Of a stretch of DNA of 64,000 nucleotides, positions 1-53,460 are shown one piece after another; the stretch's first letter is position 1; every line of letters starts with the position of its first letter. The position numbers and the translations under genes were made by a program. Source of the DNA: Bugula neritina (taxonomy: Eukaryota; Animalia; Bryozoa); the NCBI GenBank assembly GCA_964035545.1, contig OZ037767.1, positions 15,008,998 to 15,072,997 of the forward strand, in the 5' to 3' direction. The notes below the pieces were generated by a model. The model was given only the letters and a program-made list of their open reading frames with translations. It made no database searches and had not been told where the DNA came from.

Positions 1-1175
1 TTGAAGCAATCTCAGCATACTATCCACAGTTTGACCATCTTCAAATACTGCGTAAGCATATCCTACAAAAAGAAGTATTATTTTGCAATGAAGACTGTAA
101 AGTTTTTTCTTGCACCAGACTGGGTTTGGGGACTGCACTTCACCTGGGCTATAGGATTTGTGCCAGTTTCCTCTGCTGGTTTTTATTACCAACTCAACTT
201 CAAAGCTAGCTTGACTCAGCTGCATAGCTAACTACCGTTAGTTATTATAGCAAACAAGTAGACGAAAATTAGCTATCAGTATCTTATTAGGAACAGAACC
301 AAACGGTTTCAGGGTTGGTTAAATAAGAAAGGTTGGTCTGTTATATAAGAAAAATAAAGATGAAATATTATTAAGATATTATATTTGCTATCATACCAGA
401 TAATAAACCTTTGCTAGGTAGTTGAAGTTGGACTTTTCCAAATCTCTCCAATGCTAACTTTATTTCGTCTGAAATGTTTACATATAACAACAGTAATATT
501 ATTCATAACTAACATTAACTTTGGAGTTCACTCTCACAGCTAACCTATAAACTAGATTTACAGCTATTCTAAAGGACAACATTAAACAAGTAAACAGACC
601 TTTAGTCACATGCTTTGGTATTCCTCCAAGAAAAACTTTGCAAGAAAAACGTGGATTTTCGTTTTCATTTGGCATCTCACCTCGCCATTCGTGTGTTGCT
701 GTCAGAAATTCTACAAAAATATTTAGCAAATATTGAAGTATATTTAAGTTTATAGTGTCACAAAGCTAAAATAATACATAATGTTAATAGAAAACAAGAA
801 AATTTTGTTGTTGCCGATTATTAGACATATGAAACTACTGCTAGCTTACACTTGTCTTGAATAAATTGCTTTATATAACTTAAACAATAAACAGACTAAA
901 ACTATTATTACACTGCTATAATGAAATATAATATTTCCTGGAGTATGACTTAAAAGTTTCTATTAAAATAATTGTTTCTGTTGTCTTTGCAATAGAAAAT
1001 ATATTTCACAGGCAAATTCAGTAAAAACAAATGTGATTTCATTTTCAAATATTTGTTAAAACTTTCTCTAACTTTCTGAAGTTGTATATATATATACCAT
1101 ACAAAGTATATAATCTATATGCTCTAAAGTATTTAATATGTAACTTTATGTACTATACTGAGTCTTACCAGCCAT
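1..1175 (-). CDS. CPEB1: CPEB1/Orb-like RNA-binding protein, copy A (5' part; runs off the window start)
   Basis: Minus-strand exons 1175-1169 (ATGGCTG|gtaag), 710-600 (EFLTATHEWRGEMPNENENPRFSCKVFLGGIPKHVTK), 468-397 (DEIKLALERFGKVQLQLPSKGLLS) and 62-1 (GYAYAVFEDGQTVDSMLRLLQ...). Borders are GT-AG and phases are compatible. SCKVFLGG is the CPEB1 RRM1 RNP2 signature. Exon 1 is the least certain part. Confidence 0.85.
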
Positions 1176-1249
1176 ATTGTACTGTGATGGTGATTGAAGG
1201 ATCTGTTGGTAAACTCTGAGAGATGTATTCTTTGCTGTAAGAAGTCAAG

Positions 1250-1287
1250 AACTGAAGAGATCACCCAGAAGACCTCCATTATATATA
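1250..1287 (-). promoter_or_regulatory. Putative TATA box + initiator of CPEB-like copy A
   Basis: Minus-strand TATATATAA (1287-1279) lies about 30-34 nt upstream of TCAGTT (1255-1250, Inr-like TCAGTY). An ATG-free leader follows, then ACAATATGG with A at -3 and G at +4. Confidence 0.5.
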
Positions 1288-6332: not shown

Positions 6333-7550
6333 TTAGTATAATAATAATTATGATTATAATTATTGTTATAATAATTATTAATGTAAATAAATATTTTTAT
6401 AATTATTATGTAATAATATCCACTTTCAAAAGACTGACACCAAGGGAAAAACTGTATAATTACTGATAAATCTGAGAGGAATAAAGATTGGGAAACTCAG
6501 AGAGCCAAATATTTAATAGTGCTGGTCTAGAATATGTGCAATTATGTAAAGTCAGCACTTCAAATACTAGCTAGAGAGTTTTGTGATGCCAGGAAGAACA
6601 GCTGATTATAAATGCTTCTAATCTACAGCAAAACTCCAAATAAGTTGCCAACATATATTATAGAGAGATGGTATTTGGATGACACTAGCTGCAAGCACCA
6701 ACTATTATGTAGATAAATTGTTTGTCATGAATAACTACCTAGTACTATTGGTAGCAGCTGCAGTATGTTATAAGTGAAATTGAGTTTCTATTTCACTCAA
6801 AGACAAATTTAATTGAATTTATAGTAAATACTAGTTCAAAAAACATAAGTCTTTGCTTACTTGAACTTTTTGCAAACTTTAATAAAGCATATTTTTGAGC
6901 AGCACAGTAAAGGTGAGTGTGAGGAAAGAGATTATAGTTACATCATTGTACTTTTCACTATAAGATGATAAATATAGTTGTTGATTTCTCATTTACATTA
7001 TGGCACTATATCATTTTGTCATGTAGACAAAATAAGGTTTAACAAAGTTTGGACTGTTTGAAGTTGATGAAATCATGCTAACTAACTCTAAGCTGATTTT
7101 TCTGTCATGTATTTAAATACTACACTATTTTCATCCTACAATCTGCATGTACATTAGCCATTTATCTCTCTACATGTATTTTGCTTTGCTTTGAAAACTC
7201 CCTCATTCCTCGTTAAAGTATTTCAAGTCAACATCATATTGCCTTTTTCCTAATGCTTAGTGTTTAAAGGAAAAGACACATTTGATTTAAATTTATAGCA
7301 AATAATTTATTCTAAAAGTACATGTTTATAAATATAATAGTATTTGCTACCATCACTAACATAATATTTACAAATTACAAAGCAGCAAAACTCATCTGTT
7401 ACTGATGAAAAAGAAGCTAAAAAGGTTTAAGATTGTTTGGCTAAAACCTGTGAAGTAAATTATAACACAATGTGTTGTTTACAGAGAGGGAGGGAGGGGC
7501 AAGTCTGTGAATAAATATAAAGCTAGTTGATGAGTTGATGTTATGGTTAT

Positions 7551-10500
7551 TCAGTCTGTCTGTGTAGACACAGACCGGGTAGATTTCAGAGGATGCTTCC
7601 TAGCAACAGGTATGTGTTTTTGTTCACACAATAAGTGGCGGTCCAGCCAACAGCGTTCACAAAAATACTAAAACATGAAAAATACATTCATTGTACTTCA
7701 TAAACAAAATGAAGCCCGACCTTGAAAAAGAAAAGTTTTCACGAACATGCGAAGCTATATAACTTGAATATTTTTATATTTGCAAAATATGCTTAGCACA
7801 TGAAAAATAAAAGAAATCTTCAACCATTATCACTTTAGTAGGACTGGGTATGTATCAATTGTGTGGTAATAATTTAGAAGTATAAAGACATTGGCTATTG
7901 GGTATTTTACCTGAAAGCATGACGAGTGTTTACAGAAGTAGGGTCCCTCTCTCAACATACAATTACCACAGAGAGAATCTTTTACAATGTGAGGATTAAT
8001 CTGTATCTACAACACAATTTGCTCTGTTATAATCAGTATAGAAACAACCAACATAATATTGTTGCACCTTGAAATATTATACAAGAAATATTGTAGAACA
8101 TTCGAAATAAAATAGCAAACCATTGAATAAAGGATTGAAATTGTTGCAACATTGCCAAATTATTATAGTTAGTCAAAAGCTAATTAGAAAAAAATAAGGC
8201 TAAGCTAAATATATAACCAAGTTACTTGTCAAACTACCTGTTTTTGAAAGCCTATCGTATTAATAAATAGACATCCTTCCTCCACAGCCATTTTATAACT
8301 ATTTTTGCAAAGAAACTGCACTCGACCAGAACCTGAAATATTATCATATTTACTTTGCACCAGTAACACCATGTTACAGAGTAACACATCATTTTAATGT
8401 TTATTTAGATTATAGTGTATGTTTGCAAACTGCTTACATAGAAACTTTATGTAAATAACTGCAGTAGGTATATATTAAATTAACTTAAGTATGAGGGTCA
8501 GTCTTACCAATGGGGTATTTGTTTTTATCCGTGTCAATGCTTGCTGATATTACCCTCCCATAAACTTCTTTCATTATATTTGCCAACATGCTGGCCGTAA
8601 TCTTTCCATGTAATCCGCCTACAAATATGCTGTTCCCTTCTCCAATATTTTTTCTAGCCGTGAGATGAAAGTTATTATTTATATTCCAAGGAATTATCTC
8701 CACCTGGTAAACATTAAACTTTTCAAGTATATGGCATAGCCAATTATATAATTTATAAACAAAACTATGCATTACAACCACTACACACATTTCATGTAAG
8801 GACAAATAGAATGAATAACTGTTTATTCACCTTTTTACCCCTAATAGTAATTTTCCTTTCTCCATATTCTGATTGAAGCAATCTCAGCATACTATCCACA
8901 GTTTGACCATCTTCAAATACTGCGTAAGCATACCCTTCAAGTACAAAAAAAGTAATATTGTGCAATGAAGACTGTAAAGTTTTTTCTTGCACTAGTATGG
9001 GTTTGGGGACTGCACTTCACCTGGGCTATAGGATTTGTGCCAGTTTTCTCCACTGGTGTTTATTACCAACTCAACTTCAAATCTAGCTTGACTCAGATGT
9101 ATAGCTAACTAATTAGCAATCAGTATCTTACTAGGAACAGAACCAAAAGATTTCGCGGCTGGTTAAATAAGAAAGGTTGGTCTGTTATATAGGAAAAATA
9201 AAGATGAAATACAACCTTTGCGACTTTCTGGCCTAATAATTTACTCAACTGGCAGGACAAGAAGTGAAAACTTCATAGAGACCACATCTTAAATTGGATT
9301 TAGTGAGTACAATACAACTAATCTTCTTTTTGCAGATTGAATGCAGCTTAATAATTTCAAATTTTAACCACTGTGTTATTTCTAGTTGTAGTTGGGATAG
9401 TTATCAATGCTATTGCTATCTATAGCTATTATTGAGAGTAGAAAAGCTGATTGGGTTTGTTAGAAATATAGCCGCAATGAAGGTACGAAACAGGGAGGGG
9501 TGTAGTAACCTCTGCATAGTCATAGATCAGGGGTGGACAATTTCTTATCTTTGAGGACCAAGTTAAGAAGTCAAACAAAATTATAGTACACATAATAGAA
9601 CCTATGCTGATGGAGGTGCTAATCAGATTAGCAATGACACTGAAAAATGGGCAAAAGGGTCACAAGTGGCAATGGGACTCCCAGTTGTCCTCCTTTGCAG
9701 TAGATGAACAGTTAATTATATATATCTGAGATGTAAAAATGTTATCCTCACTGGGATTCAAACCCTACGCCTTTGACTAACCATTACACAAAGAGATTCC
9801 TAACAACATGATACTATTAAGATATTATATAAAGATGAAATACTATTAGGATATTATATTTGCTATCATACCAGATAATAAACCTTTGCTAGGTAGTTGA
9901 AGATGGACTTTTCCAAATCTCTCCAATGCTAACTTTATCTCGTCTGAAATGTTCACATATAACTATAATATCATTCATAACTAACATTAACTTTAGAATT
10001 CATTCTCACAGCTAACCTATAAACTAGATTCACTGCCATTTTAAAGGACAACATTAAACAATTAAACAGACCTTTAGTTACATGCTTTGGTATTCCTCCA
10101 AGAAAAACTTTGCAAGAATAACGTGGATTTTCGTTTTCAATTGGCATCTCACCTCGCCATTCGTGTGTTGCTGTCAGAAACTCTACAAAAATATTTGACA
10201 AATTAAATTAAACTTAAGTCTATAGAGTCACAAGGCTAAAATGATACATAATGGTAATAGAAAACAAGAAAACCTGGTTGTTTAGGATTATTAAACATAT
10301 GAAACTACTGTTTGCTGATACTTGTATTGAATATAAGCTGCTTTTTATAACTTAAACAATAAACAGACTGAAACTATTATTGCACTGCTATAATGAAATA
10401 TAATATTTTCTGGAGTATGACTTAAAAAGTTGCTATTAAAATTGTTTCTGTTGTCTTTGCAATAGAAAATATATTTCACAAGCAAATTCAGTAAAAACAA

Positions 10501-10638
10501 ATGTGATTCAATTTTAAATATTTGTTAAAACTTTCTTTAACTTTCTGAAGTTGTATATACCATACAAAGTATATAATCTATATGCTCTAAGGTATTTAAT
10601 ATGTAACTTTATGTACTATACTGAGTCTTACCAGCCAT
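7551..10638 (-). CDS. CPEB1: CPEB1/Orb-like protein (RRM1-RRM2-ZZ), copy B, 8 exons, about 265 aa
   Basis: Exons 10638-10632, 10182-10072, 9943-9872, 8934-8831, 8703-8508, 8332-8238, 8006-7911, 7667-7551 (TGA). All are GT-AG and phase-compatible, with no internal stop. Motifs: [49 protein letters not shown] (CPEB1-type, not the CPEB2-4 KYPKGAGR), and ZZ domain SLCGNC..PYFCKHSSCFQYFCERCWLDRH..H with 6 Cys + 2 His. Confidence 0.9.
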
Positions 10639-10712
10639 ATTGTACTGTGATGGTGATTGAAGGATCTGTTGGTAAACTCTGAGAGATGTATTCTTTGCTG
10701 TAAGAAGTCAAG

Positions 10713-10750
10713 AACTGAAGAGATCTCCCAGAAGACCTCCATTATATATA
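10713..10750 (-). promoter_or_regulatory. Putative TATA + Inr, copy B
   Basis: Same motifs and spacing to the ATG as copy A. Confidence 0.5.
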
Positions 10751-13165
10751 GGTACTGATGACCTCAATAGGGCAATTATCTCTTGAAGTCAAATCTTTAA
10801 GAACTCAATCCCAACACCAGAACCAGTAATTAGAGGTACTCAGAGCAACAAAGAAAACTCATCTCTCAGGCTGATAGGATTAAGAAAGTGTTACAAACAC
10901 CAGAAACTATAATTAGGGGTATCAAAAGAAGCTCATCTGAAAAAAGAGTTACAAATTTGCTTGAGGTAATAACACACTATACTGAGAGCACTGAGTTTTG
11001 GGGTAATTTAGTAATTGTAATGACGTCACAAGTGAACAAACTTTTTCCCCCAACACTTTTTGACTTGAGGTTTACTTTTATTTTAGCTGATCTAACAAAT
11101 ATTTGCTTTACCTGTAAAAATATTTTTATGAAATGTATATTTTTGCTGAAACCTGCTATAATGTTTTAGCTGATAATCGGTTTTTGCAAGGTATAAAACA
11201 ACTTTTATATATACCAACTAGATTTTTCAAATATATATATTATCTTAACTAAAACCAAAGCATTGACTTGTACGAAAAAACTAATTTTAGGCCAGTGTAT
11301 TTTTATTCCTTTTATATCTAAGTTTTACATATGTTATAGTTCAAATTGTTTAGAAACTAATACTTGCTTTGCCTGTTTCCTTGAAATTTATGGGTAGTTA
11401 GTGCATAAATAAATTCCTTTGATCTAAATTAACTCATGCATTTTGCATTTTTTATACTTCTTGTTGAAAAAATAAGATTTCCATAAGAAGTATTCATTAA
11501 AAAATGATGTCTATTGTAATTCATTCCTGTTTTCCATCCCACACAATTTTGTGAAAATTGGAATACAATTCCATATAATATTAATTATTATTAAATGTTA
11601 TTTTGAGTTTAGCAATCAATACAACAGCCATATATGTATATATAGGTATATTACTATAAGTTATATATTGCACCAAAATATAAATAGCATCTAACTGGGA
11701 AAAGTCTTCATCTGGGATGAAATCCTTTCAAATAAATATAATGTAAGAGTTCAACAAATAGTCTAGATTAATCTCACAGGAGATGAAGTTTTAGCAATAA
11801 TTATCTTGAACATTTTGTACCAGAATTATAATTATGTAATAAGATCTTCTTCCAAAGAACTCACTGTACCAGAGAGAAAGCTGTATAATTGCTGACCAAT
11901 CAGAGAGGATTAAAATTTGAGAAACTCAGATAGCTAAAAATCAAAGGCTGTAGTTAAAGAATTGCATAATTGAGTAGCTGTCATTAGCTGGTACTCATAC
12001 AGTAAGTTTTGGGTACATACTTGTGAGCTCAACATAAAGCGTTCTTTCTCATTAAACAAGAAGTAGGTTTATAGAGAGCAGTCTGAGGTGCATAGGTTGT
12101 CTTCAATATTCAAAGAATTATAGCCTATACAAAGAAGTAGTTGACTCTAGTTCTGTTTCTCTGAATAGTGATACAATACTGCATCAGACTTGTTGAGCAG
12201 CTCTGCTTGAGACAAACTGTTAATTTAATTATTAAACCACTAGGTACAAATTAATGCAGATAAAATATACAGGGTGTGTGCTTTGATTAGTTATACTCTA
12301 AAATGACAGGATATGAAATTTCCTCTGGCCAGAGTGTTTTATACATGCTTTTTTAATATTTAAAACAGGGGTGTCCAACCTTTTCAGATTGAGGGCCACT
12401 GAAACTGAAATGGAATACTCCGATGGCAAGTGTTACATTGTAAAAGTTAGTTTGAGCTGGAGGCCACAGCATCAGCAATTTTCAAAATACTTTGTTCTAA
12501 ATTCTTATGAATCATTACATAGTTAAGTCATAATTCGTTGCAAAATGTATACAAATAAGATATTTAAACGGTGGCTTTTTACTCTAACTCATTGGTGTGT
12601 AAAAATATTTTATTGGTTGTGCCCTTGAGGGTCAAATGTAGGCTGCCCCCATCTAGCCCTGATTAAAATTATCACTATAATTTGCTGGTTTTCAAAAATT
12701 GAAAAAATATTAAAAGGGAAAATGAGTGGCATATAAGAGTGCTGGCCTATATAATATACATACTGTATATATGTAAGGTCAGTGTTTCAAATACTAGCAC
12801 TGAGTTTGGGATCATCCAATCATAAATTTGGGTTAGAATCCCAGTTGGGGAAAGTATTTTGTACATATTGAAAATCTCCTGGGAATATACGAGCTCTAAG
12901 CCCGAACTTGTAGATTTTTATGGATAATTAAATTTAATTTATTAATTAGTTGCAGTTGTAAATTAAAACTTTTAGGTGAAATTAGGTTTCGTTGTTTTCC
13001 TGCATGACTTTTGAGCAATACCAGGTAATTTTATCTTGATAACTATTATTAGTATAAAGTTTTCAAAGCAGAAATAAAGTATTTGAAGTCAACATCATAT
13101 TGCCTTTTTTTCATGTTTAGTGTTTAAAGGAAAAGACACATTTGATTTCAATTTATAGCAAATAA

Positions 13166-13275
13166 TTTATTCTAAAAGTACATGTTTATAAATATAATAG
13201 TATTTGCTACCATCACTAACAAAATATTTACAAATTACAAAGCAGCAAAACCCATCTATTACTGATAAAAAAAAA
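13166..13275 (-). promoter_or_regulatory. 3'UTR module: CPE - Pumilio element - AAUAAA (copy C; paralogous positions in B, D, E, F, G)
   Basis: Minus strand reads U-run+AU CPE (13275-13265), UGUAAAUA (13232-13225) and AAUAAA (13171-13166). The hexamer is also at 7306-7311 and 23338-23343. The AT-rich background lowers the significance of these motifs. Confidence 0.45.
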
Positions 13276-13408
13276 GCCTAAAAAGGTTTAAGATGATTTG
13301 GCTAAAACTTGTGAAGTAAATTATAACACAACGTATTGGTTACAAGGAGAGGGGGAGGGGCGAGCCTGTGAATAAATATAAAGCTAGTTGATGAGTTGAT
13401 GTTGATGT

Positions 13409-16400
13409 TCAGTCTGTCTGTGTAGACACAGATCTGGTAGATTTCACAGGACGCTTCCTAGCAACAGGTATGTGTTTTTGTTCACACAATAAGTGACAGT
13501 CCAGCCAACAGCGTTCACAAAAGTACTGAAACATGGAAAATACATTCATTGTACTTCATAAACAAAATGAAGGCTGACCTTGAAAAAGAAAAGTATTCAT
13601 AGACATGAGACGCCATATAACTTAAATATTTCTATATTTGCAAAATATGCCTATACCACATGAAAAATAGAAGTAATCTTCAACCATTAGTACTTCAGTA
13701 AAACTGGATATGTATCAATTGTGTGGTAATAATTTAGAAGTATAAAGACATTGGCTACCGGGTATTTTACCTGAAAGCATGACGAGTGTTTACAGAAGAA
13801 GGGTCCCTCTCTCAACATACAATTACCACAGAGAGAATCTTTTACAATGTGCGGATTAATCTGTATCTACAACACAATTTGTACTGTTATAATCAGTATA
13901 GAAACAACCAACATAATATTGTTGCACCTTGAAATATTATACAAGAAATATTGTAGAACAATCAAAAAATAAAATAGCAAACCATTGAATAAAGGATTGA
14001 AATTGTTGCAACATTGCCAAATTATTACAGTTAGTCAAAAACTAATTAGAAACAATTACGGCTAAGCTGAATATATAACCAAGTTACTTGTCAAAATACC
14101 TGTTTTTGAAAGCCTATCGTATTAATAAATAGACATCCTTCCTCCACAGCCATTTTATAACTATTTTTGCATAGAAACTGCACTCGACCAGAACCTGAAA
14201 TATTATCATATTTACTTTGCACCAGTAACACCATGTTACAGAGTAACACATTATTTTAATGTTTATTTAGATTATAGTGTATGTTTGCAAGCTGCTTACA
14301 TATAAACTTTAGTAAATAACTACAGTAGGTATATATTAAATTAACTTAAGTATGAGGGTCAGTCTTACCAATTGGGTATTTGTTCTTATCCGTGTCTATG
14401 CTTGCTGATATTACCCTCCCATAAACTTCTTTCATTATTTTTGCCAACATGCTGGCCGTAATCTTTCCATGTAATCCGCCTACAAATATGCTGTTCCCTT
14501 CTCCAATATTTTTTCTAGCCGTGAGATGAAAGTTATTATTTATATCCCAAGGGATTATCTCCACCTGGTAAACATTAAACTTTTCAAGTATATGGCATAG
14601 TCATTATAATTTATAAACAAAACTATACATTACAACCACTACACACATTTCATGTAAGGACAAATAGAATAAACAACTGATTATTCACCTTTTTACCCCT
14701 AATAGTAATTTTCCTTTCTCCATATTCTGATTGAAGCAATCTCAGCATACTATCCACAGTTTGACCATCTTCAAATACTGCATAAGCATATCCTTCAAAA
14801 AGAAGTGATATTATGGAATGAACGATTGTAAAGTTTTTTCTTGCACCAGATTAGGCTTGGGGACTGCACTTCACCTGGGCTATAGGATTTGTGCCAGTTT
14901 CCTCTGCTGGTTTTTATTACTAACTCAACTTCAAAGCTAGCTTGACTCAGTTGTATAGCTAACTAATTAGCAATCAGTTTCTTACTAAGAACAGAACCGA
15001 TGAGTTTCACAGGTGGTTTAATAAGAAAGGTTGGTCTGTTATATAAGAAAAATAAAGATGAAATACAACCCTTGCAACTTTCTGGCTTAATTATTTACTC
15101 AACTGGCAGGACAAGAAGTGAAAATTTGTGCCCGGTTTCTCCACTCAACTTTAAAGCTAGCTTGACTCAGCTGTACTGCTAACTACCGTTAGTTATTATA
15201 GCAAGCAAGTAGAAGAAAATTAGCAATCAGTATCTTACTAGGAACAGAACCAAATGGTTTAACTGTTGGTTAAATAAGAAAGGTTGGTCTGTTATATAAG
15301 AAAAATAAAGATGAAAAACAACGGTTGCAACTTTCTAGCCTAATTATTAACTCAACTGGCAGGACAAGAAGTGAAAATTTCATAGAGACCATATCTTAAA
15401 TTGGATTCAGTGAGTACAATACAACTAAATTTTTTTTGCAGATTGAATGCAGCTTATTAATTTTAAATTTCAACCACAGCGTTCTTTCTGGTAGTAGTTG
15501 GGATAGTTATAAATACTATAGCTATAGCTATTAATGAAAGTAGAAAAGCTGATTGGGTTTATTAGAAATATAGCCGCATTGACGGTAAAAAAACATGGAG
15601 GGGTGTAAGTTCATAAATTTTATCAATTCTGCCCAGTCTACCAAAGAAGTTCAAAAACAACTAAACTTAAGTAGTAACTTCTGCATAGTTATAGATCAGG
15701 GGTGGGCAATTTCTTATCTTTGAGGACCAAATTAAAAAGTCAAATAAAATGATTGTACACATAATAGAACCTATGCTGATCGATGTGCTAATCAGAATAG
15801 CAATGACACTGAAAAATGGGCAAAGAGTCACAAGTGGCAATGGGACTCCCAGTTGCCCACCCCTGCTGTAGATGAACAGGTAATTATATATCTGAGATGT
15901 AAAAATGTTGTCCCCACTGGGATTCAAACCCTAGGCATTTCACTAACCATTACACAAAAAGATTCCTAACGACATGATACTATTAAGATAATATTATATT
16001 TGCTATCTTACCAGATAATAAACCTCTGCTAGGTAGTTGAAGTTGGACTTTTCCAAATATCTCCAATGCTAACTTTATCTCGTCTGAAATGTTTACATAT
16101 AACTATAATATTATTCATAACTAACATTAACTTTGGAATTTACTCTCACAGCTAACCTATAAACTAGATTTACAGCTATTCTAAAGGACAACGTTAAACA
16201 ATTAAACAGACCTTTAGTCACGTGCTTTGGTATTCCTCCAAGAAAAACTTTGCAAGAATAGCGGGGATTTTCGTTTTCAATTGGCATCTCACCTCGCCAT
16301 TCGTGTGTTGCTGTCAGAAATTCTACAAAAAATATTTGACAAATTAAATTAAACTTAAGTCTATAGTGCCACAAGGCTAAAATGATACATAATGTTAATA

Positions 16401-16784
16401 GAAAACAAGAAAACTTGATTGTTGCAGATTATTAGACGTATGAAACTATACTGTTAGCTTATATTGGTCTTGAATAAGCTGTTTTATGTAACTCTATGTA
16501 ACTAAAAAACAGACTAAAACTACTATTGCACTGCTATAATGAAATATAATATTTTCTGGAGTATGACTTAAAAAATTGCTATTAAAATTGTTTCTGTTGT
16601 CTTTGCAATGAAAATATATTTCACAAGCAAATTCAGTAAAAACAAATGTGATTTCATTTTCAAATCTCTGTTAAAACTTTCTTTAACTTTCTGAAGTTGT
16701 ATATATCATACAAAGTATATAATATATATGCTCTAAAGTATTTAATATGTAACTTTATGTACTATACTGAGTCTTACCAGCCAT
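13409..16784 (-). CDS. CPEB1: CPEB1/Orb-like protein, copy C, 8 exons
   Basis: Exons 16784-16778, 16322-16212, 16083-16012, 14792-14689, 14564-14369, 14194-14100, 13866-13771, 13525-13409. Exon lengths match copy B (7/111/72/104/196/95/96/117 nt) and the frame is open. Confidence 0.9.
15697..15865. mobile_element. hAT-like MITE in intron 3 of the CPEB-like gene
   Basis: Perfect 13-bp TIRs CAGGGGTGGGCAA / TTGCCCACCCCTG, with flanks TTATAGAT / CTGTAGAT (decayed 8-bp TSD). Paralogues lie at about 9528-9697, 25635-25799, 35080-35243 and 43733-43897, with a partial copy at 53070-53144. Absent from the shortened intron of copy A. Confidence 0.75.
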
Positions 16785-16858
16785 ATTGTACTGTGATGGT
16801 GATTGAAGGATCTGTTGGTAAACTCTGAGAGATGTATTCTTTGCTGTAAGAAGTCAAG

Positions 16859-16896
16859 AACTGAAGAGATCACCCAGAAGACCTCCATAATATATA
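16859..16896 (-). promoter_or_regulatory. Putative TATA + Inr, copy C
   Basis: Same spacing as copy A; TATA variant TATATATTA. Confidence 0.45.
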
Positions 16897-19800
16897 GGTA
16901 CTGATGACCTCAATAGGGCAATTATCTCTTGAAGTCAAATCTTTAAGAACTCAATCACAACACCAGAACCAGTAATTAGAGGTACTCAGAGTAACAAAGA
17001 AAACTCATCTCTTAAGCTGGTAGGATTAAGAAAGTGTTACAAACACCAGAACCTGTAATTAGGGGTATCAAAAGAAGCTCATTTGAAGAAAGAGTTACAA
17101 AGTTGCTCGAGGTAATAACACACTATACTGAGAGCACTGAGTTTTGGGGTAATTTAGTAACTGTGATGACATTATAAGTGGACAAACCTTTCCCCAACAC
17201 TTTTTGACTTGAGGTTTACTTTTATTTCAGCTGATCTAACAAATATTTGCTTTACCTCTAAGAATATTTTTATGAAATGTATATTTTTGCTGAAACCAGC
17301 TATAATGTTTTAGCTGATAATTAGTTTTTGCATAGTATAAAATAACTTTTATATTACAACTAGATTTTTCAAATACATATATCTTAATAAATGTTATATG
17401 ACTTTTTAAAACTTCATAAATGCAATAGTAATTAACTAGCCATTAGGGTTACTAGAGTTTGTTAGAGTTATGAATTTTACCAAAATCTTATTGATTATGC
17501 AGATAAAAACATTTATATAACCAAAACCAAAGCATTGACTTTCATAAAAAAAACTGCTGATTAGTCTAGAATCTAGCCATTCTCGAGCCAACACAAAAGT
17601 AAATAATTGACTTGTAAAAGTTTTGGTTAAGGCTTGGAATAAGCTTTTATAATAATATATAAGTAAAAAGGTAACTAAAATTTTCAGCAGTTAGATATTA
17701 TTTAACAGCGTAATTGATAAAGCAAGCAAAGTGTTTTTAGAGTTCTTTGCAAATTGTTTATGGTGTCTTACCCTGAGCTAATATCTTTAAATAAACTACA
17801 ACATATATAACAGACGGAAGCACAACAATAATGGCAAAAAATTTAGGACTAAATTGTCAAAAGTCTAAAATAATGAAAACTATTTTATATTTTGTACATT
17901 ATGATTAAAACTATTGCAAAGCAATTTTAGGCCAGTGTATTTCTATTTCTCTAGCTGATTTTAACACATTGTTCACTATTATAATTATTATAGTCAAAAT
18001 AGTATATATACTACTTGCTTTGCCTGTTTTCTTCTCTTTGTAGACATTTCAATTATTTTGGCATAATTTGTCAAGTTTCTTCAAATTTATGAGTATTTAG
18101 CGCAAAAATAAATTTCCTTGACTTAAATTAATTTATTAATTTTGCATTATCTATACTTCTTGTTTGAAAAAATAAGATTTCCATAAGAAGTATTTGTTAA
18201 AAATGATGTCTATTGTAGGCTAATGTATTTCTGTTTTCTACCCCACAGAACTTGGTGAAAGTTGGAAAACAATTACATATAATATTAATACTTAATAAAT
18301 GTTATTTCCAGCTTAGCAATCAATACAACAGCTATATAATATGTATATATATATAGGTATATTACTATAAGTTATATATTGCACCAAAATATAAATAGCA
18401 TCTAACTGGGAAATGTCTATATCTGGGATGAAACCCTTTCAGATAAATACAATGTAAGAGTTCAACAAATAGTCTAGTTTAATCTCACAGGAGATGAAGT
18501 TTTAGCATTAATTATTTTGAACATTTTGTACCAGAATTATAATTATGTAACAATAAGATCTTCTTCCAAAGGACTCTCTGTACCAGAGAAAAAGCTGTAT
18601 AATTGCTGACCAATCAGAGAGGATTAAAAATTGAGAAACTCAGATAGCTAAAAGTCAAAAGCTGTATAGTTAAAGAATTACATAATAGAGTAGCTGTCAT
18701 ACAGTAAGTTTTGAGTACATGCATGTTAGCTGAACATAAATAACTCTTTCTCATTAAACAAGAAATAGGTTCATAAAGAGCAGTCTGAGGTGCATAGGTT
18801 GTCTTCAACAATCAAAGAATTATCGTCTATACAAAGAAGTAGTAGACTTTAGTTCTGTTTCTCTGAATAGTGATTCGATACTGCATCAGACTTGTTGAGC
18901 AGCTCTGCTTGAGACAAACTGTTACTTTAATTATTAAACCACTAGATACAAATTAATGCAGATAAAATATACAGGGTGTGTGCTTTGATTAGTTATACTC
19001 TAAAATGGCAAGATATGAAATTTCTTCTGACCAGAGTGTTTTATACATATTTTTTTAATATCTAACTTTTCTAGATCGAGGGCCACTGAAAGGGAATATT
19101 CTCATGGCAAGTGCCACATTGTAAAAGTTAGTTTGAGCTGAGGGGCCACAGCATCAGCAATTTTCAAAATACTTTATTCTAAAATTTTATGAATAATTAT
19201 ATAATAAAGTCATAATAGGTACTGCAGGCTGCATTTGTTACAATATGTATACAAATAAGATATTTAAACAGTGGCTTTTTACTCTAATTCATTGGTGTGT
19301 AAAAAATATTTTATTTGTTGTGCCTTTAATAAATGTAGGCTGCCCCCCCCCATCCGGCCCTGGGGTCATTTGTTAAACAGCCCTGATCTAAACTATCACT
19401 ATAACTTGCTTGTTTTAAAAAAAAATTGAAAAAATGTTTAAAGGGGAAAATGAGTGCTGGCCTATATAACATATATACATATATGTGAGGTCAGTGTTTC
19501 AAATACTAGCACTGAGTTTGGGATCATCCGATCATAAATTTGGGTTTGATTCCCAGTGGGGGAAATTATTTTGTGCATATTGAAAGATGTCTTGGTTTGA
19601 AAATCTCCTGGGATTACACTAGCTCTAAGCACCGATTTGTATATTTTTATGGATAAGTTATTGACCACTATTAGTTACTGTTGTATATTAGAATTTATAA
19701 AGAAAGTTAAGTTTTTATTTCACTCCAAGAGATACAAATATGATTGAATTTACGGCAAAATTTAGCAAATATAATAAGCTAGTTTCAGGTATGAAATCAT

Positions 19801-20256
19801 TCAGTGCTTTAACAAACCTCTCTTATATTATAATTGATTTTATAAACAGTAACTATTACTACACAGGTTAGACTGTACATTAAGGTCTTGGAAGAGTCTA
19901 TACATTCCTAATATTTTGCCTAAAACTTAGAATAAATAGTATTAGCAGCGAGATTTAAGGCACATAAAAGTGGATTTTTAAACTAAGGGAATTGTGTTTT
20001 CATGACTTTACAACAGATAGATAGATGGAAACTACACATGAGAAGAGAGAACAACTCCCAGTCATAAACTATGAGTCAGTTTTCAGTGTCTTGCCATAAG
20101 AAGCGTAACTCTACATGTACAAACATATGTATATGGTACATTGGTTTGTGTGTTTCAATGATTCGCAGTAGATGTGGCAACTGCTTGACTGCTAATTTCA
20201 TGGGTCTCATTTCTATTTATTTGACTTGAAACATCACGAACCAATTTGCTGTTTGT

Positions 20257-21583
20257 TTAAATTGTTTGTTCATAAGTTTCTTTAACTGCTGTATCTGTAA
20301 AAACTGCTGCAGTTCTTATTGGTGGCTTTTCTTTTGTCAGATTAACATCAGCTAAAAAATTAGCAAAGCTTGTGCATCAACAGAATCTACTGAGCAAAAA
20401 AATAAAATACATCTTTGCATAGATCATTTGCTAAGTCACATTTCTGATTATAAATTTTTCAAATTTTTTTTATTTTTTATACATTTTGCAACACTAATAG
20501 ATTCAATTAATAAGAAAACTAATCCAAAGACCTCTTTCATAAAATTCTTTAATTTTTTTTTGCAATTTAGTATGTTATATTTGTTATACTTATAATATGC
20601 AACTAATTATAAAACCAGAATATGATGGATGCAAATAAATTCAACCAGAATAATATATTATTATTCTTATAATATAATAATATATTATCATATTACTACA
20701 TTACATAAATACTACATGTAACATAATATATTGCACTTATAAAAGTAGACTACTATATGAATAAAGCAGTATACAAATAAATGTACAACAACATTATAAA
20801 AACAAGGAAATTTACCTTCCAATGTGTTTGGAACATGAGGAGGTTCAACATCATAACTAAAATATTAACAAATAAATAACGTCTACAATTCTTGGTTGTG
20901 AAAGCTATCAGCCAACAGATTTAGAAATGTGCTTTATAAGCAATAAATTTAAGAAAAATTGCGTTGCTTTTAGAACCAACATATCATAATTTTTGAGCAT
21001 CATTATTTACACCTAATTAATATATACAAGAGCAGCCTGTGAAATGACTGATTCCTATAATACAGTATTAGAATAGTAGCTGCCTTTATAATCTGTGCAG
21101 ATGTACGTATAGTTTTAGTTAAAAATACTCGCAAATATCCCATAAGCCTTTGCAGACCCGTCTTTGGCTTCTCAACAAGGAAACATTTATCTGAAATTAT
21201 AACAGAAAAGTATCAGTTTATGTTGAGGTAAAAGCTAATATTTTCTCATATGCATAGCATATTACGAGAAAATAAAGGGGATATTCATGTTTAATATGAT
21301 TTGGATAAACTGCATGTTGGACTCTATCAACATGTATAAATTAAAGCGTCACTAGACTATCCGTGAAATGTAGTATAATATATACTATATAGTTTTGACT
21401 CAACTGGTTTAGTTGGTATATACATTAAAACTAAAAAAATCACCCCTACCCGTAGATAATCCGAAATCGCCCTAGCTTACATAACTATTGGACATACAGC
21501 TGCAGTAACTGAAGAAATACGTTATATGGAAAAAGTTGTAGTAATGAATATGTTGCTTACCCAGTTCTTCAAGGTTTAGTATG
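20257..21583 (-). CDS. Unidentified multi-exon gene or gene fragment (at least 4 exons), copy 1
   Basis: Exons 21583-21561, 21190-21133 (GC donor), 20856-20816 and 20351-20257 splice in phase to ...ILNLEELDKCFLVEKPKTGLQRLMGYFYDVEPPHVPNTLEADVNLTKEKPPIRTAAVFTDTAVKETYEQTI*. The start codon was not established. Confidence 0.55.
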
Positions 21584-22464
21584 CTGTTCCAAATACAAAA
21601 CAGGTGAGATAATAATACAGAGAAATTCATATTAATATTACATTTACATCAATATAATCATAGCAATACAGTACATGTTAAGATAACATCTACTATAGCT
21701 GTGTACACAAAATTGCTGCAAGTGAAGTGGGCAACAATGGTTTTTAGAATCAACATTGCGTTTTAGTTATTTACGTTAATCTTCAACAATCATTTTATAT
21801 TCATATGTTTGAATTGTTGTAGAAATATCTGATGAAATATATTAATCTATTATTTTAACTGTCTAATAAAATATTTTGTTAAAAAGCTTCATATTTTTAC
21901 ATGGTGAAAGCTTTATCATACGTTGCAATAAATTTTAGATATTATCTGCATGTTGTTCAAAGTAAATCAAGTAATTTGTGAAGTAGCAAAATTTTCTAGA
22001 AAGTGGTTTCAGTTAAAAAAAATTTGAAAATTTTCAATATGTAAGGAAATGTTCAATTAGAGATGTAAAGATTAAAAACTCATCAGCAATTACATGGCTA
22101 AATGATCTATAGCACTTTTTCTTATTTTATCCAGCATTTATTAAAAATCTCCCTTAAGACTCAAATATTTCGCACTATCTTTCGCAAGGAAGTATTTTGT
22201 AAGCTAGCAGGACTTCAGGCTGAGTATGGCGATGGCGTATCAGGCACAGTGAATCAAATTTATGATCAGTCTGAGCATGTGCAATTACCATTCTACTAAG
22301 AATCTATAGATTTACTTTTACTTTTAGTGCAACAAAAATTTGAAGTACCATACTAGAATGCTAGCATTTACGCTTTAATTTTTTGCTACTGGTTGTGGCA
22401 TTATGTTGGTAGTTCAACATATATATATACATATATGTATATACATGTATATATTATATATCTC

Positions 22465-22515
22465 AATCTGTGGACAGCAGCTGTTTCAGGATTTGTCCCT
22501 TCATCAGCACAGATC
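22465..22515 (-). ncRNA. Minimal type I hammerhead ribozyme (Penelope/retrozyme-like)
   Basis: Minus strand reads GAUCUGUG-CUGAUGA-AGGGACAAAUCCU-GAAA-CAG CUG CUG-UC-CACAGAUU. It has the full core (CUGAUGA, GAAA, GUC), stem I AUCUGUG/CACAGAU, stem II AGGG/UCCU and a short stem III ACAG/CUGU. Predicted cleavage is between 22473 and 22472. Confidence 0.8.
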
Positions 22516-23610
22516 AGAGTACCATGGCCCACACCTTCGCAATATACATTCCCATAATTATGTGGCTTCATAGAGGGCTGCTCATAGGGGCAGTGAAAAG
22601 TTTGTCTGAGTCAATATAATTATCATTGACTCAGTGAAATATTGTCAACACCTGATGGAAACAAATCATTAAATTTTCAATAATCACTGCATTTCCATGA
22701 ATGGGAATGAACCTGTACTGATGATGCCCATAGGGATTACATGGAAGGAAAGCCGCACGTTTTTATGCAATCTATACGAAGTTATCTTCTCTTCGTATAC
22801 ACCATATAATTTATGGTATAAATTGTTTATAGTTTATAGATTGTATTTTGTGTTATCTACACCATTTTTATCCTACAATCTGTACCCTATAGCAATTTAT
22901 CTCTCTACATATATTTTGCTTTGCTTTGAAAACTTTCTCATTCCCTTTATGGTATGTGTTGACATTTGTAAACTTGAAGCAGTAGCTACTATATACTAAA
23001 TTACTAACTTACAATAAATTCAAAACTCAAACTGTAAAATTTCTCTGCATGTAAGTTTTGGTAATGTGAAGTTTTCAAAGTGAAAACGAGGTATTTATAG
23101 TTTGTGAGGTTACTTTCTTTCTAAAGCTTGGTGGCTTAATAACCACTTGTGCTTCCTTTTTTGCGCATGAGTTTTAAGCAATAACAAATTATCTTATCTT
23201 GATTCATGTACAATTTCTCTGCATTTAACTTTTAGTAGTGTAAAGTAAAAATAAAGTATTTGAAGTCAACATCATATTGCCTTTTTCTTAATGCTTAGTG
23301 TTTAAAGGAAAAGACATACTAGATTTATAGCAAATAATTTATTCTAAAAGTACATGTTTATAAATACAATATTATTTGCTACCATCACTAACATAATATT
23401 TACAAATATACAAAGCAGCAAAACTTATCTATTACTGATAAAACGAAGCTTAAAAAGGTTTAATATAATTTGGCTAAAACTTTTGAAGTAAATTATAACA
23501 CAACTTGTTGGTTACAGGGAGGGGGGAGAGAGGGAGGAAGGAAAGGAGGGAGGGAGGGGCAAGTCTGTGAATAAATATAAAGCTAGTTGATGTGTTGATG
23601 CCGTGGATAT

Positions 23611-26600
23611 TCAGTCTGTCTGTGTAGACACAGACCGGGTAGATTTCACAGGATGCTTCCTAGCAACAGGTATGTGTTTTTGTTCACACAATAAGTGGCA
23701 GTCCATCCAACAGCGTTCACAAAAGTACTAAAACATGGAAAATACATTCATTGTACTTCATAGACAAAATGAAGGCTACCTTGAAAAAGAAAAGTTTTCC
23801 CATATAACTTGAATATTTCTATATTTGCAAAATATGCCTACCACATGAAAAATAGAAGAAATTTTCAACAATTAGCACTTTAGTAAGACTGGATATGTAT
23901 CTATTGTGTGGTAATAATTTAGAAGTATAAAGACATTGGCTATTGGGCATTTTACCTGAAAGCATGACGAGTGTTTACAGAAGTAGGGTCCCTCTCTCAG
24001 CATACAATTACCACAGAGAGATTCTTTTACAATGTGAGGATTAATCTGTATCTACAACACAATTTGCACTGTTATAATCAGTATAGAAACAACCAACATA
24101 ATATTGTTGCACCTTGAAATATTACACAAGAAATATTGTAGAACAATCAAAATAAAATAGCAAACCATTGAATAAAGAATTGAAATTGTTGCAATAGTTA
24201 GTCAAAAGTTAATTAGGAAAAATTACAGCTAAGCTAAATATATAGCCATTTCAAGTTACTTGTCAAACTACCTTTTTTTGAAAGCCTATCGTATTAATAA
24301 ATAGACATCCTTCCTCCACAGCCATTTTATAACTATTTTTGCATAGAAACTGCACTCGACCAGAACCTGAAATATTATCATATCTACTTTGCACCAGTAA
24401 CACCATGTTAAAGAGCAACACATTATTTTAATGTTTATTTAGATTATAGTGTATGTTTGCAAACTGCTTACATATAAACTTTATGTAAATAACTACAGTA
24501 GGTATATATTAAATTAACTTAAGTATGAGGGTCAGTCTCACCAATTGGGTATTTGTTTTTATCCGTGTCTATGCTTGCTGATATTACCCTCCCATAAACT
24601 TCTTTCATTAATTTTGCCAACATGCTGGCCGTAATCTTTCCATGTAATCCGCCTACAAATATGCTGTTCCCTTCTCCAATATTTTTTCTAGTTGTGAGAT
24701 GAAAGTTGTTATTTATATCCCAAGGAATTATCTCCACCTGGTAAACATTAAACTTTTCAAGTATATGGCATTATAATTTACAAACAAAACTGTACATTAC
24801 AACCACTGCACACCTTTTATGTAAGGACAAATAGAATAAATAATTGTTTATTCACCTTTTTACCTCTAATAGTAATTTTCCTTTCTCCATATTCTGATTG
24901 AAGCAATCTCAGCATACTATCCACAGTTTGACCATCTTCAAATACTGCGTAAGCATATCCTTCAAGTACAAAAAGAAGTGATATTGTACAATGGAGACTG
25001 TAAAGTTTTTTTTTGCACCATACTGGGCTTGGGGACTGCACTTCACCTGGGCTGAGATTTGTGCCAGTTTCCTCCACTGGTTTTTATTACTAACTAAACT
25101 TCAAAGCTAGCTTGACTCAGCTGTATAGCTAACTACCATTAGTTATTATAGCAAGCAAGTGGATGAAAATTAGCAATCAGTATCTTACTAGGAACAGAAC
25201 CAAAAGGTTTTACGGTGGGTTAAATAAGAAAGGTTGGTCTGTTATATAAGAAAAATAAAGATGAAATACTTTTTGGCCTAATAATTTACTCAACTGGCAG
25301 AATGGGAAATGAAATTTTCATAGAGACCATATCTCAAATTGGATTCAGTGAGTGCAATACAACTAAACTTTTTTGTAGATTGAATGCAGCTTATTAATTT
25401 TAAATTTCAACTACAGCGTTCTTTCTGGTAGTAGTTGGGATAGTTATAAATACTATTGCTATCTAGCTATTATTGAAAGTAGAAAAGCTGATTGGGTTTA
25501 TTAGAAATATAGCCGCATTGAAGGTACGAAACATGGAGGGGTGCAATTTCATAAATTTTATCAATTCTGCCCAGTCCACCAAAGAAGTTCAAAAACAACT
25601 AAACTTAAGTAGTAACTTCTGCATAGTTATAGATCAGGGGCGGGCAATTTCTTATCTTTGAGGACCAAGTTAAGAAGTTAACCTAAATGATTGTACACAC
25701 AATAGAACTTATGCTGCCGTGCTAATCAGAATAGCAATGACCCTGAAAAATGGGCAAAGGGTCACAAGTGGCAATGGGGCTTCCAGTTGCCCTCTCTTGC
25801 AGTATATGAATAGACAAGTATATATATCTGAGATGTAAAAATGTTGTCCCCACTGGGATTCAAACCCTAGGCTTTTGACTAACCATTACACAAAGAGATT
25901 CCCAACAACATGATACTATTAAGATATTGTATCTTACCAGATAATAAACCTTTGCTAGGCAGTTGAAGTTGGACTTTTCCAAATCTCTTCAATGCTAACT
26001 TTATCTCATCTGAAATGTTTACATATAACAACAGTAATATTATTCATAACTAACATTAACTTTGGAATTCACTTTCACAGCTAACCTACAAACTAGATTT
26101 ACAGCTATTTCAAAGGACAAAATTAAACAATTAAACAGACCTTTAGTCACCTGCTTTGGTATTCCTCCAAGAAAAACTTTGCAAGAATAACGTGGATTTT
26201 GGTTTTCAATTGGCATCTCACCTCGCCATTCGTGTGTTGCTGTCAGAAATTCTACAAAAATATTTGACAAATTAAATTAAAGTTAAGTTTATAGTGTCAC
26301 AAGGCTAAAATGATGCATAATGTTTATGGAAAACAAGAAAACCTTGTTGTTGCCGATTATTAAACATATGAAACTACTGCTAGCTTACACTTGTCTTGAA
26401 TGAGCTGCTTTATATATATCTTAAATAAAAAAACAGACTAAAACTATCATTGCACTGCTATAATGAAATATAATATTTTCTGGAGTATGACTTAAAAAAG
26501 TTGCTATTAAAATTGTTTCTGTTGTCTATGCAATAGAAAATATATTTCACAAGCAAATTCAGTAAAAACAAACTATGTGATTTCATTTTCAAATATTTGT

Positions 26601-52364: not shown

Positions 52365-53460
52365 AAAGTATTTGAAGTCAACATCATATTGCCTTTTTCT
52401 TAATGCTTAGTGTTTAAAGGAAAAGACACATTTGATTTCAATTTATAGCAAATAATTTATTCTAAAAGTACATGTTTATAAATACAATATTATTTGCTAC
52501 CATCACTAACATAATATTATTTACAGATTACAATTAGCAGCAAAACTCATCTGTTACTGATAAAAAAGAAGCCTAAAAAGGTTTAACATCATTTGGCTAA
52601 AACTTGTGAATTAAATTGTAACACAACGTGTTGTTTACAGAAAAGAAGGATATTACCCTCCCATAAACTTCTTTCATTATTTTTGCCAACATGCTGGCCG
52701 TAATCTTTCCATGTAATCCGCCTACAAATATGCTGTTCCCTTCTCCAATTTTTTTTCTAGTTGTGAGATGAAAGTTATTATTTATATCCCAAGGGATTAT
52801 CTCCACCTGGTAAACATTAAACTTTTCAAGTATATGGCATAGTCATTATAATTTTATAAACAAAACTATACATTACAACCACTACACACATTTCATGTAA
52901 GGACAAATAGAATAAATAACTGTTTATTCACCTTTTTACCCCTAATAGTAATTTTCCTTTCCCCACATTCTGATTGAAGCAATCTCAACATACTATATTC
53001 ACAGTTTGACCATCTTCAAATACTGCGTAAGCATATCCTTCAAGTACAAAAAGAAGTAATATTGTGCAATGGCAATAGCAATGACACTGAAAAATTGGGC
53101 AAAAGGTCACAAGTGGCAATGGGACTCCCAGTTGTCCACTCCTGCAGCAGATGAACAGGTAATTATATATATCTAAGATGTAAAAATGTTGTCCCCACTA
53201 GGATTTAAACCCTAGGGGTAATACTAACCATTACACAAAGAGATTCCTAACAACATGATACTATTAAGATATTATATCTTACCAGATAATAAACCTCTGC
53301 TAGGTAGTTGAAGTTGCACTTTTCCAAATCTCTCCAATGCTAACTTTATCTCGCCTGAAATGTTCACATATAACTATAATAATATTATTCATAACTAACA
53401 TTAAATTTGGAATTCACTCTCACAGCTAACCTATAAACTAGATTTACAGCTATTTCAAAA
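52365..53460 (-). pseudogene. Truncated CPEB1-like pseudogene, copy G
   Basis: Exon 3 (53354-53283) is intact. Exon 4 (53037-52932) is 106 nt instead of 104, a 2-nt frameshift. Exon 5 (from 52806) breaks at about 52650 and joins directly to 3'UTR sequence, so exons 6-8 are deleted. Homology ends in intron 2 at about 53460, so exons 1-2 are absent. Confidence 0.9.

Follow-up and report, generated by a model that had tools for sequence, protein, structure and literature searches.

Proteins of the CPEB family play a central part in switching the translation of maternal and synaptic mRNAs, and it is their N-terminal half that carries the switch. Here, we describe a tandem array of six genes from the bryozoan Bugula neritina which appear to encode the RNA-binding module of CPEB1 and to lack such a half. 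The array occupies much of a window of 64,000 nucleotides (30% GC; C3:15,008,998-15,072,997, from contig OZ037767.1 of a 216-Mb assembly, GCA_964035545.1), to which all plain positions below refer. As best explanation, held with moderate confidence, we propose that these are mini-CPEB genes with their own promoter and a replaced N-terminus, which would act as competitors or repressors of other CPEB proteins or as adaptors. That the product is a protein of 261 residues, be it from the transcript start proposed here or from a variant in which a non-coding exon or a trans-spliced leader is joined at an acceptor-like site before the start codon, we consider quite probable from the sequence.

Self-comparison of the window revealed a direct repeat unit of 6-10 kb, each unit carrying one minus-strand gene of eight exons. 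The six intact tandem CPEB-type genes (copies A-F, all minus strand) have their start codons at 1175, 10638, 16784, 26713, 36162, and 44819. Copies B-F lie wholly inside the window, and the remainder of copy A (the rest of exon 4 and exons 5-8), which falls just outside the window start, is intact in the genome sequence. All splice sites and reading frames are kept in the six full-length copies, every intron is of the GT-AG type, and no stops interrupt the frames. In copy B, whose gene model is given in Table 1, the coding length of 783 nt yields 261 residues, so that the product of about 265 residues proposed in a first-pass annotation of this DNA was close in size but not exact. The same annotation had placed RRM1 within about 25 residues of the start, and ribonucleoprotein motif 2 (RNP2) of RRM1 (K27-V-F29) indeed begins at residue 27. 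It had likewise reported six 5'-complete copies sharing a first exon that ends in ATGGCTG within a strong Kozak context; in all six we find A at -3, G at +4, and the donor gtaag, and an alignment of 300 nt around exon 1 displays 99% column identity.

Because the homology, Pfam, and PDB searches were run exon by exon, the shortness of the pieces lowers their individual scores. In Pfam, CEBP_ZZ was recognized in exon 7 (E 9.8e-9, 35.7 bits at a cut-off of 29.8) and in exon 8 (E 0.0017), and RRM_7 at the end of exon 2 (E 0.084) and RRM_1 in exon 5 (E 0.015) both stayed below the cut-off in these short pieces. With phmmer against PDB, exon 2 (7.6e-6) and exon 5 (3.9e-13) matched the CPEB1 RRM12 structures 2MKK/2MKH, at residues 3-31 and 110-174 of the human construct, respectively, and exon 7 matched the CPEB1 ZZ domain 2M13 (1e-4); exons 4, 6, and 8, searched singly in the same way, gave no CPEB match, being too short and diverged. 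In local alignments, the seven larger exons are colinear on canonical CPEB1 proteins, from the 'T-x-T-W-x-G' segment through the end of the ZZ domain. Furthermore, copies A-F share without exception the eight zinc ligands (six Cys and two His, identified by alignment with the canonical CPEB1 ZZ motif), and they all keep Trp11 and the RNP aromatics, which correspond to F239, Y281, Y283, and F353 of human CPEB1. The CPEB1-specific N-terminal extension is present as well: W11 corresponds to Trp220 and NPRYSC to NPIYSC, and position 372 is Glu instead of Asp. In human CPEB1, Trp220 is the first structured residue and is essential for the fold; it packs on RRM2 and is paired with an acidic residue at 372 (PMC4083092).

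Judged by these matches, the predicted product is a diverged CPEB1-type RNA-binding module, consisting of RRM1 with its extension, RRM2, and ZZ. The earlier proposal of a CPEB RNA-binding module agrees with the Pfam assignments to RRM_7, RRM_1, and CEBP_ZZ and with the PDB matches to 2MKK/2MKH and 2M13. Only 10 residues stand ahead of Trp11, which is residue 3 of the solved human CPEB1 minimal RNA-binding construct, and the predicted start lies 9 residues ahead of the boundary of that construct. A long N-terminal regulatory region, which is typical of CPEBs without defining the family by sequence, was not seen, as no coding exon was found upstream. Compared with vertebrate CPEB1 (2MKH/2MKK for RRM1-RRM2, 2M13/2MKE for ZZ), the mini protein shows identical domain order, colinear exon-wise alignment, the extension with its essential Trp and NP-YSC, and all eight zinc ligands. 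In contrast, the disordered N-terminal half of about 200-300 residues, which holds the regulatory sites in vertebrate CPEB1, appears to be missing, two loops of RRM1 are together shorter by about 22 residues (counted from the equivalent of Trp220 to that of Gln327), a 16-residue C-terminal tail follows the ZZ domain, and identity reaches only about 40-50% even in the best exons. This tail (...KSTRSVSTQTD-stop, 7554-7601 and equivalents) is invariant in copies A-F, and the residues adjacent to it are variable.

With regard to recognition of UUUUA RNA, the contact residues K237, F239, Y281, Y283, K324, I329, W331, F338, F353, and H358 of human CPEB1 are retained, and the mini protein is likely to bind U-rich RNA. 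Several other contacts are altered, as detailed below, which may shift the target motif; the same specificity as CPEB1 for the cytoplasmic polyadenylation element (CPE) is thus not assured, above all at the fifth nucleotide.

Among copies B-F, the ratio of non-synonymous to synonymous divergence (dN/dS) is 0.23 when pooled and ranges from 0.12 to 0.37 between pairs, and a dS of about 0.09 matches the intron p-distance of 0.092. By this measure, the copies are under purifying selection at the protein level. Selection on the protein is favored by the dN/dS values together with the invariant splice sites, zinc ligands, and RNP aromatics and the conserved AATAAA, as opposed to a broken fragment in the same array (fragment G, positions in Table 1), in which exon 4 aligns with two gaps and exon 5 ends abruptly after ...RVIS.

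The region around the first exon is conserved as well. A block of about 420 nt (10560-10980) has 4-11% variable columns, as compared to 7.6% in coding sequence, 47% in introns, and 51% upstream of 10980; it takes in exon 1 with the initiator and TATA box, together with 70 nt of intron 1 on one side and 220 nt beyond the TATA box on the other, and its conservation drops sharply to intron level 265 nt upstream of the initiator. Within the genome, the promoter and exon-1 block occurs seven times, always within this array, which speaks for the short form of the protein. The TATA/initiator-like pair at fixed distance noticed in the first-pass annotation was recovered, the first T of TATATATAAT standing 34 nt before the A of TCAGTT in six copies. 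The predicted leader of 78 nt has no upstream ATG in any copy, and only 3 of its 78 columns vary among copies B-F. RNA structure was considered as a reason for this conservation and ruled out, as the leader showed no stable fold (z +1.0); in addition, an Rfam search over 7000-24000 returned nothing at gathering score. Similarly to the leader, the first 70 nt of intron 1 (10562-10631) vary in only 3 of 70 columns, which suggests either a downstream promoter or splicing element or a gene-conversion tract.

The statistical weight of the TATA-initiator pair needs a careful reading. The pattern TATAWAW-N18-26-TCAGTY was observed 11 times in the window against 1.2 expected, and these 11 matches represent just two independent sites per repeat unit, namely the promoter and a plus-strand site in intron 5. 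As the copies of the pattern are paralogous, its weight comes from its position relative to the ATG; a match on the correct strand within 150 nt upstream of the ATG was calculated to occur by chance about 1e-3 times. The intron 5 match (TATA-spacer-TCAGTC, 8469-8503, plus strand) is conserved in five copies (B-F); it probably reflects chance, and it could mark an antisense start. Taken as a whole, the conservation profile resembles that of a promoter rather than that of an internal exon and favors a promoter placed directly upstream of exon 1. The idea of a short first exon with its own start, put forward in the first-pass annotation, gains from this profile (4-11% variability as against 47% in introns).

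Several observations weigh against our interpretation. At the RNA-binding surface, Q327E, M360K, D372E, and Y429H are altered contacts, D427N occurs in five of the six copies (copy A keeps the Asp), E265Q and M321I are probable changes, and the Y313 equivalent falls in a 2-residue deletion; these substitutions make CPE binding and competition with canonical CPEBs uncertain. A database search by phmmer with exon 5, the most conserved one, returned canonical CPEB1s as best matches, at no more than 52% identity, and a word-indexed database search with the 113-residue open frame around exon 5 gave no match, its length window excluding proteins of 261 residues. The statistics of the motifs are weak, TATA and initiator motifs being common in DNA of 30% GC and a second, chance-like match being present in intron 5. 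Near-identity around exon 1 could stem in part from gene conversion. Furthermore, the reading frame is open from an acceptor-like site to the ATG, and this site is fully conserved in six copies. Lastly, a search for RNA sequencing runs containing the locus listed none. The one sequencing run containing it (X1) covers introns and intergenic DNA evenly and has no intron-skipping joints; this run is genomic DNA and carries no information on splicing or starts.

The acceptor-like site is at the center of the question of whether the N-terminus is really short. As previously noted in the first-pass annotation, it lies 66 nt before the donor (cttcttacag, ending at 10698), and we find it in all six copies. 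An in-frame TGA reported upstream of the ATG was also found, at 10710-10708, 24 codons above the ATG in all six copies. This stop rules out an unspliced extension of the frame, but, being located 5' of the acceptor-like motif, it is silent on cis-splicing, a point that the first-pass annotation acknowledged in part. Were the acceptor at 10698 in use, one would expect everything above its pyrimidine tract to be intronic and as variable as the other introns; the conservation found there runs against this expectation. The short form is also favored by the canonical geometry of the TATA/initiator pair and by the overlap of the acceptor-like motif with +6 to +19 of the predicted transcript.

An arrangement that leaves the 261 residues untouched, and which we deem unlikely, would place the transcript start further upstream, maybe near a conserved island with an NF-Y-type motif, with the acceptor at 10698 receiving a non-coding exon or a trans-spliced leader. 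Its location 59 nt before the ATG is a typical place for a leader acceptor, and the CCAAT-type island 1.2 kb upstream is also found in other gene arrays. However, it leaves the TATA/initiator pair and the promoter-like conservation without explanation, our literature search gave no article on spliced leaders or trans-splicing in bryozoans, and, with a start at the initiator itself, the acceptor would come after just 18 nt of transcript, too little for splicing.

Rather improbable, in our view, is a longer protein, in which hidden coding exons further upstream would be joined in cis at 10698 and supply an N-terminal region as well as about 20 leader-derived residues, so that the mini form would be an annotation artefact. 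Such a model would account for the retention of ttgacttcttacag in six copies with an open frame to the ATG, it has a precedent in full-length paralogs of the same genome, which carry N-terminal exons upstream of the same intron, and a conserved island lies at a distance of 1.2 kb upstream. However, above the acceptor the conservation continues for 265 nt through the initiator and TATA box and then ends, and the open frame of the island has no ATG and is crossed by inter-copy differences most of which alter an amino acid. The space itself is also narrow: between the TATA box of copy B and the poly(A) signal of copy C lie 2.4 kb, with no minus-strand open segment of more than 62 codons. Among three candidates in these 2.4 kb that run from an ATG to a phase-1 donor, the two that were tested (those of at least 15 codons) are each intact in only 3 of 5-6 homologous places. 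A tblastn search of the window with the N-terminal exons of the full-length paralogs yielded nothing beyond chance, a weak result since N-terminal regions diverge fast, and a Pfam CEBP1_N search of the genome found no match but is uninformative, its controls being unmatched likewise.

That the copies are silent relics, recently amplified and 5'-truncated with frames kept open by youth or gene conversion, would fit fragment G and a second broken piece at C3:15.083 Mb (fragment H), several 5'-truncated or transposon-disrupted copies of a neighboring CPEB1-like gene, and RNA-run and protein-database searches that gave no record, but is very improbable. Although silent sites have diverged by 9%, splice sites and frames have survived in all six full-length copies, and the rate of non-synonymous change is a quarter of the synonymous one. 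Conservation extends to the promoter, the leader, and the poly(A) signal, and no copy departs from the others in its zinc ligands, RNP aromatics, or Trp11.

Returning to the mini-CPEB genes with their own promoter, their origin can be approached through the other CPEB genes of this genome. A CPEB2/Orb2-type gene on C1 (L003) has a Q/N/M-rich N-terminal exon of 333 codons, a CPEB1-type gene with N-terminal exons is located on C2 (L004), and a second CPEB1-like gene at C3:15.14 Mb (L001) has a near-duplicate at 15.76 Mb (L002), both with N-terminal exons. The mini gene, L004, and L001 agree in where intron 1 falls, 8 codons ahead of the Trp codon, and in its phase (phase 1), and in open-frame maps the later introns (before VQ/VEIIPW, after KYPIG, before IQI/VQxDP, and before YFC/YYC) match as well. 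These shared intron positions identify the mini gene as a DNA-level duplicate and not a retrocopy. We envisage that, in a duplicated CPEB1-type gene, the exons encoding the disordered N-terminal half were lost and a new promoter and the minimal first exon ATGGCTG were gained exactly at the ancestral phase-1 intron, and that the unit was then tandemly amplified to six intact copies, which would have been retained under purifying selection.

In functional terms, each repeat unit would be a gene in its own right, furnished with a separate TATA/initiator promoter and a separate AATAAA signal. The mini protein would occupy U-rich, CPE-like sites in 3' untranslated regions, as the behavior of engineered RRM12ZZ proteins implies, and would be beyond the reach of the switching operated through the N-terminal half, i.e. 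phosphorylation, degradation, and cofactor docking. It might hence compete constitutively with the full-length CPEBs that other genes of this genome encode, or repress them, with an effect scaling with dosage, to which six copies would be suited; alternatively, it might serve as an adaptor via its ZZ domain and invariant C-terminal tail. By analogy with the engineered truncations, we infer that the competitor or repressor role is the most likely one. N-terminally truncated CPEBs serve the field as dominant-negative tools. In Xenopus oocytes, RRM12ZZ proteins compete in a dominant-negative manner and depend on their ZZ domain to do so (PMC4083092), which provides a precedent for the competitor mode proposed in the first-pass annotation; the article cites Hake and Richter 1994 and Mendez et al. 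2000 for such truncations of Xenopus CPEB1 and CPEB4. These engineered proteins have the same architecture and N-terminal boundary as the mini protein, but they are laboratory constructs, whereas the mini genes are germline-encoded, six-fold, and under selection.

Multiplication of CPEB1 is reminiscent of ctenophores. The finding of six paralogs in Mnemiopsis, Hormiphora, and Beroe was reported as surprising, CPEB1 being a single gene as a rule; in Mnemiopsis, four of the six have consecutive identifiers (ML05853a-ML05856a) (PMC10284499). Both cases are lineage-specific multiplications within the CPEB1 subfamily, but the ctenophore one concerns another phylum, and proteins consisting of the RNA-binding module only are not described in PMC10284499. 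The B. neritina genome, moreover, has the canonical CPEB1-type and CPEB2-type genes with long N-terminal exons in addition to the array. Variation of the N-terminus with the RNA-binding module kept is also achieved by the alternative promoters of Drosophila orb and orb2; these, however, produce isoforms of one gene with sizeable N-terminal regions, whereas the mini genes are separate and have 10 residues before the module. Our literature search returned no natural genes encoding only the CPEB RNA-binding module and no CPEB expansion in bryozoans. Database matches with short N-termini were considered as natural mini-CPEBs and set aside as likely truncated gene models: a Trichoplax protein of 282 residues has a sibling of 427, and a protein of 336 residues has relatives of 368 and 563.

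As a tentative extension of this model, the array may represent a dedicated natural 'anti-CPEB' family, evolved, amplified, and maintained, whose members would be bound constitutively to CPE-like sites and would either confront the full-length, switchable CPEBs with a threshold that depends on dosage or couple the bound mRNAs to other factors through the ZZ domain and tail. If true, this way of controlling translation would be without a described counterpart in any animal. If expressed, the mini genes would reveal how evolution uses competitive CPE occupancy as a regulatory layer, and they would offer a natural minimal CPEB for structural and specificity work. Six mini genes and further CPEB1-like duplicates within 750 kb also form a clear lineage-specific expansion outside ctenophores.

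Table 1. Features of the mini-CPEB array, in positions of the window; exons, promoter elements, and poly(A) signal are those of copy B.
Feature	Positions	Strand	Remarks
Conserved island, about 200 nt	11812-12015	-	NF-Y-type CTGATTGGTCAG, 1.2 kb upstream of ATG; 94% conserved among array units
Conserved proximal promoter block	10717-10980	-	about 11% variable columns vs 47% in introns; Fisher p 2e-29 vs introns
TATA box	10741-10750	-	TATATATAAT, -34 to -25 relative to initiator A; in all six copies (TATATATTAT in C)
Initiator-like TCAGTT	10713-10718	-	predicted +1 is A at 10716; invariant in six copies
Acceptor-like site	10698-10711	-	ttgacttcttacag; overlaps +6 to +19 of predicted transcript; holds in-frame TGA
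Exon 1 (predicted)	10632-10716	-	78-nt leader, then ATGGCTG (Met-Ala and first base of Glu3), donor gtaag; coding part 10638-10632
Exon 2	10072-10182	-	RRM1 N-terminal extension (Trp11 = human CPEB1 Trp220; NP-YSC) and RNP2 (KVFLGG)
Exon 3	9884-9943	-	alpha1/beta2 part of RRM1
Exon 4	8831-8934	-	RRM1 RNP1 (GYAYAVF) and shortened beta-a/beta-b insert
Exon 5	8508-8703	-	inter-RRM linker (IIPW...NNNF) and first half of RRM2
Exon 6	8238-8332	-	second half of RRM2 (SGRVQF...)
Exon 7	7911-8006	-	first half of ZZ zinc finger; CEBP_ZZ E 9.8e-9; 2M13
Exon 8, coding part	7551-7667	-	second half of ZZ, 16-residue tail ending STQTD, stop TGA 7553-7551
Poly(A) signal AATAAA	7306-7311	-	240 nt past stop; similar distance in copies B-F
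Copy A, exons 1-3, part of exon 4, and promoter	1-1287	-	remaining exon sequence just before position 1, intact
Copy C, TATA to stop codon	13409-16896	-	intact
Copy D, TATA to stop codon	23611-26825	-	intact
Copy E, TATA to stop codon	33246-36274	-	intact
Copy F, TATA to stop codon	42018-44931	-	intact
Fragment G	52611-53354	-	exons 3-5 only, without exon 1 or 2

The wider neighborhood contains further CPEB-related sequence. At least 17 matches to the CPEB ZZ domain fall within about 750 kb (C3 15.008-15.763 Mb); they comprise the mini array, the near-identical full-length genes L001 and L002, and several 5'-truncated or transposon-interrupted copies (such as L005 and L006), and in L006 an open frame of 445 codons is inserted upstream of RRM2. 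The array itself terminates in complementary broken pieces, fragment G with exons 3-5 and fragment H (L010:4899-6096) with the promoter and exons 1 and 2 only, in which His9 is replaced by Tyr. The region is clearly prone to partial duplication. In addition, a Logan contig (P0142) with an open frame of 136 residues is 83% identical to L001 over exon and intron sequence and derives either from a diverged paralogous copy or from a related species; no comparable record was found for the mini genes.

Outside the CPEB genes, a candidate hammerhead ribozyme around 22461-22541 was searched for and matched no Rfam hammerhead family, neither at gathering score (7000-24000) nor at E up to 1 (22300-22700), the only Rfam matches in 22300-22700 being spurious microRNA-type ones to a TA tract. 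The NF-Y-type island recurs on C3 in more than 30 further copies of 74-85% identity, which all have the minus-strand orientation and fall in the interval 15.6-16.3 Mb. In that interval, they precede unrelated genes for repeat-rich (SGSTTGP-type) proteins at a distance of about 1.1 kb, for instance at L007:6618-6814, L008:6349-6542, and L009:6395-6589, and the island may be either a regulatory module that these upstream regions have in common or a repeat of this region.

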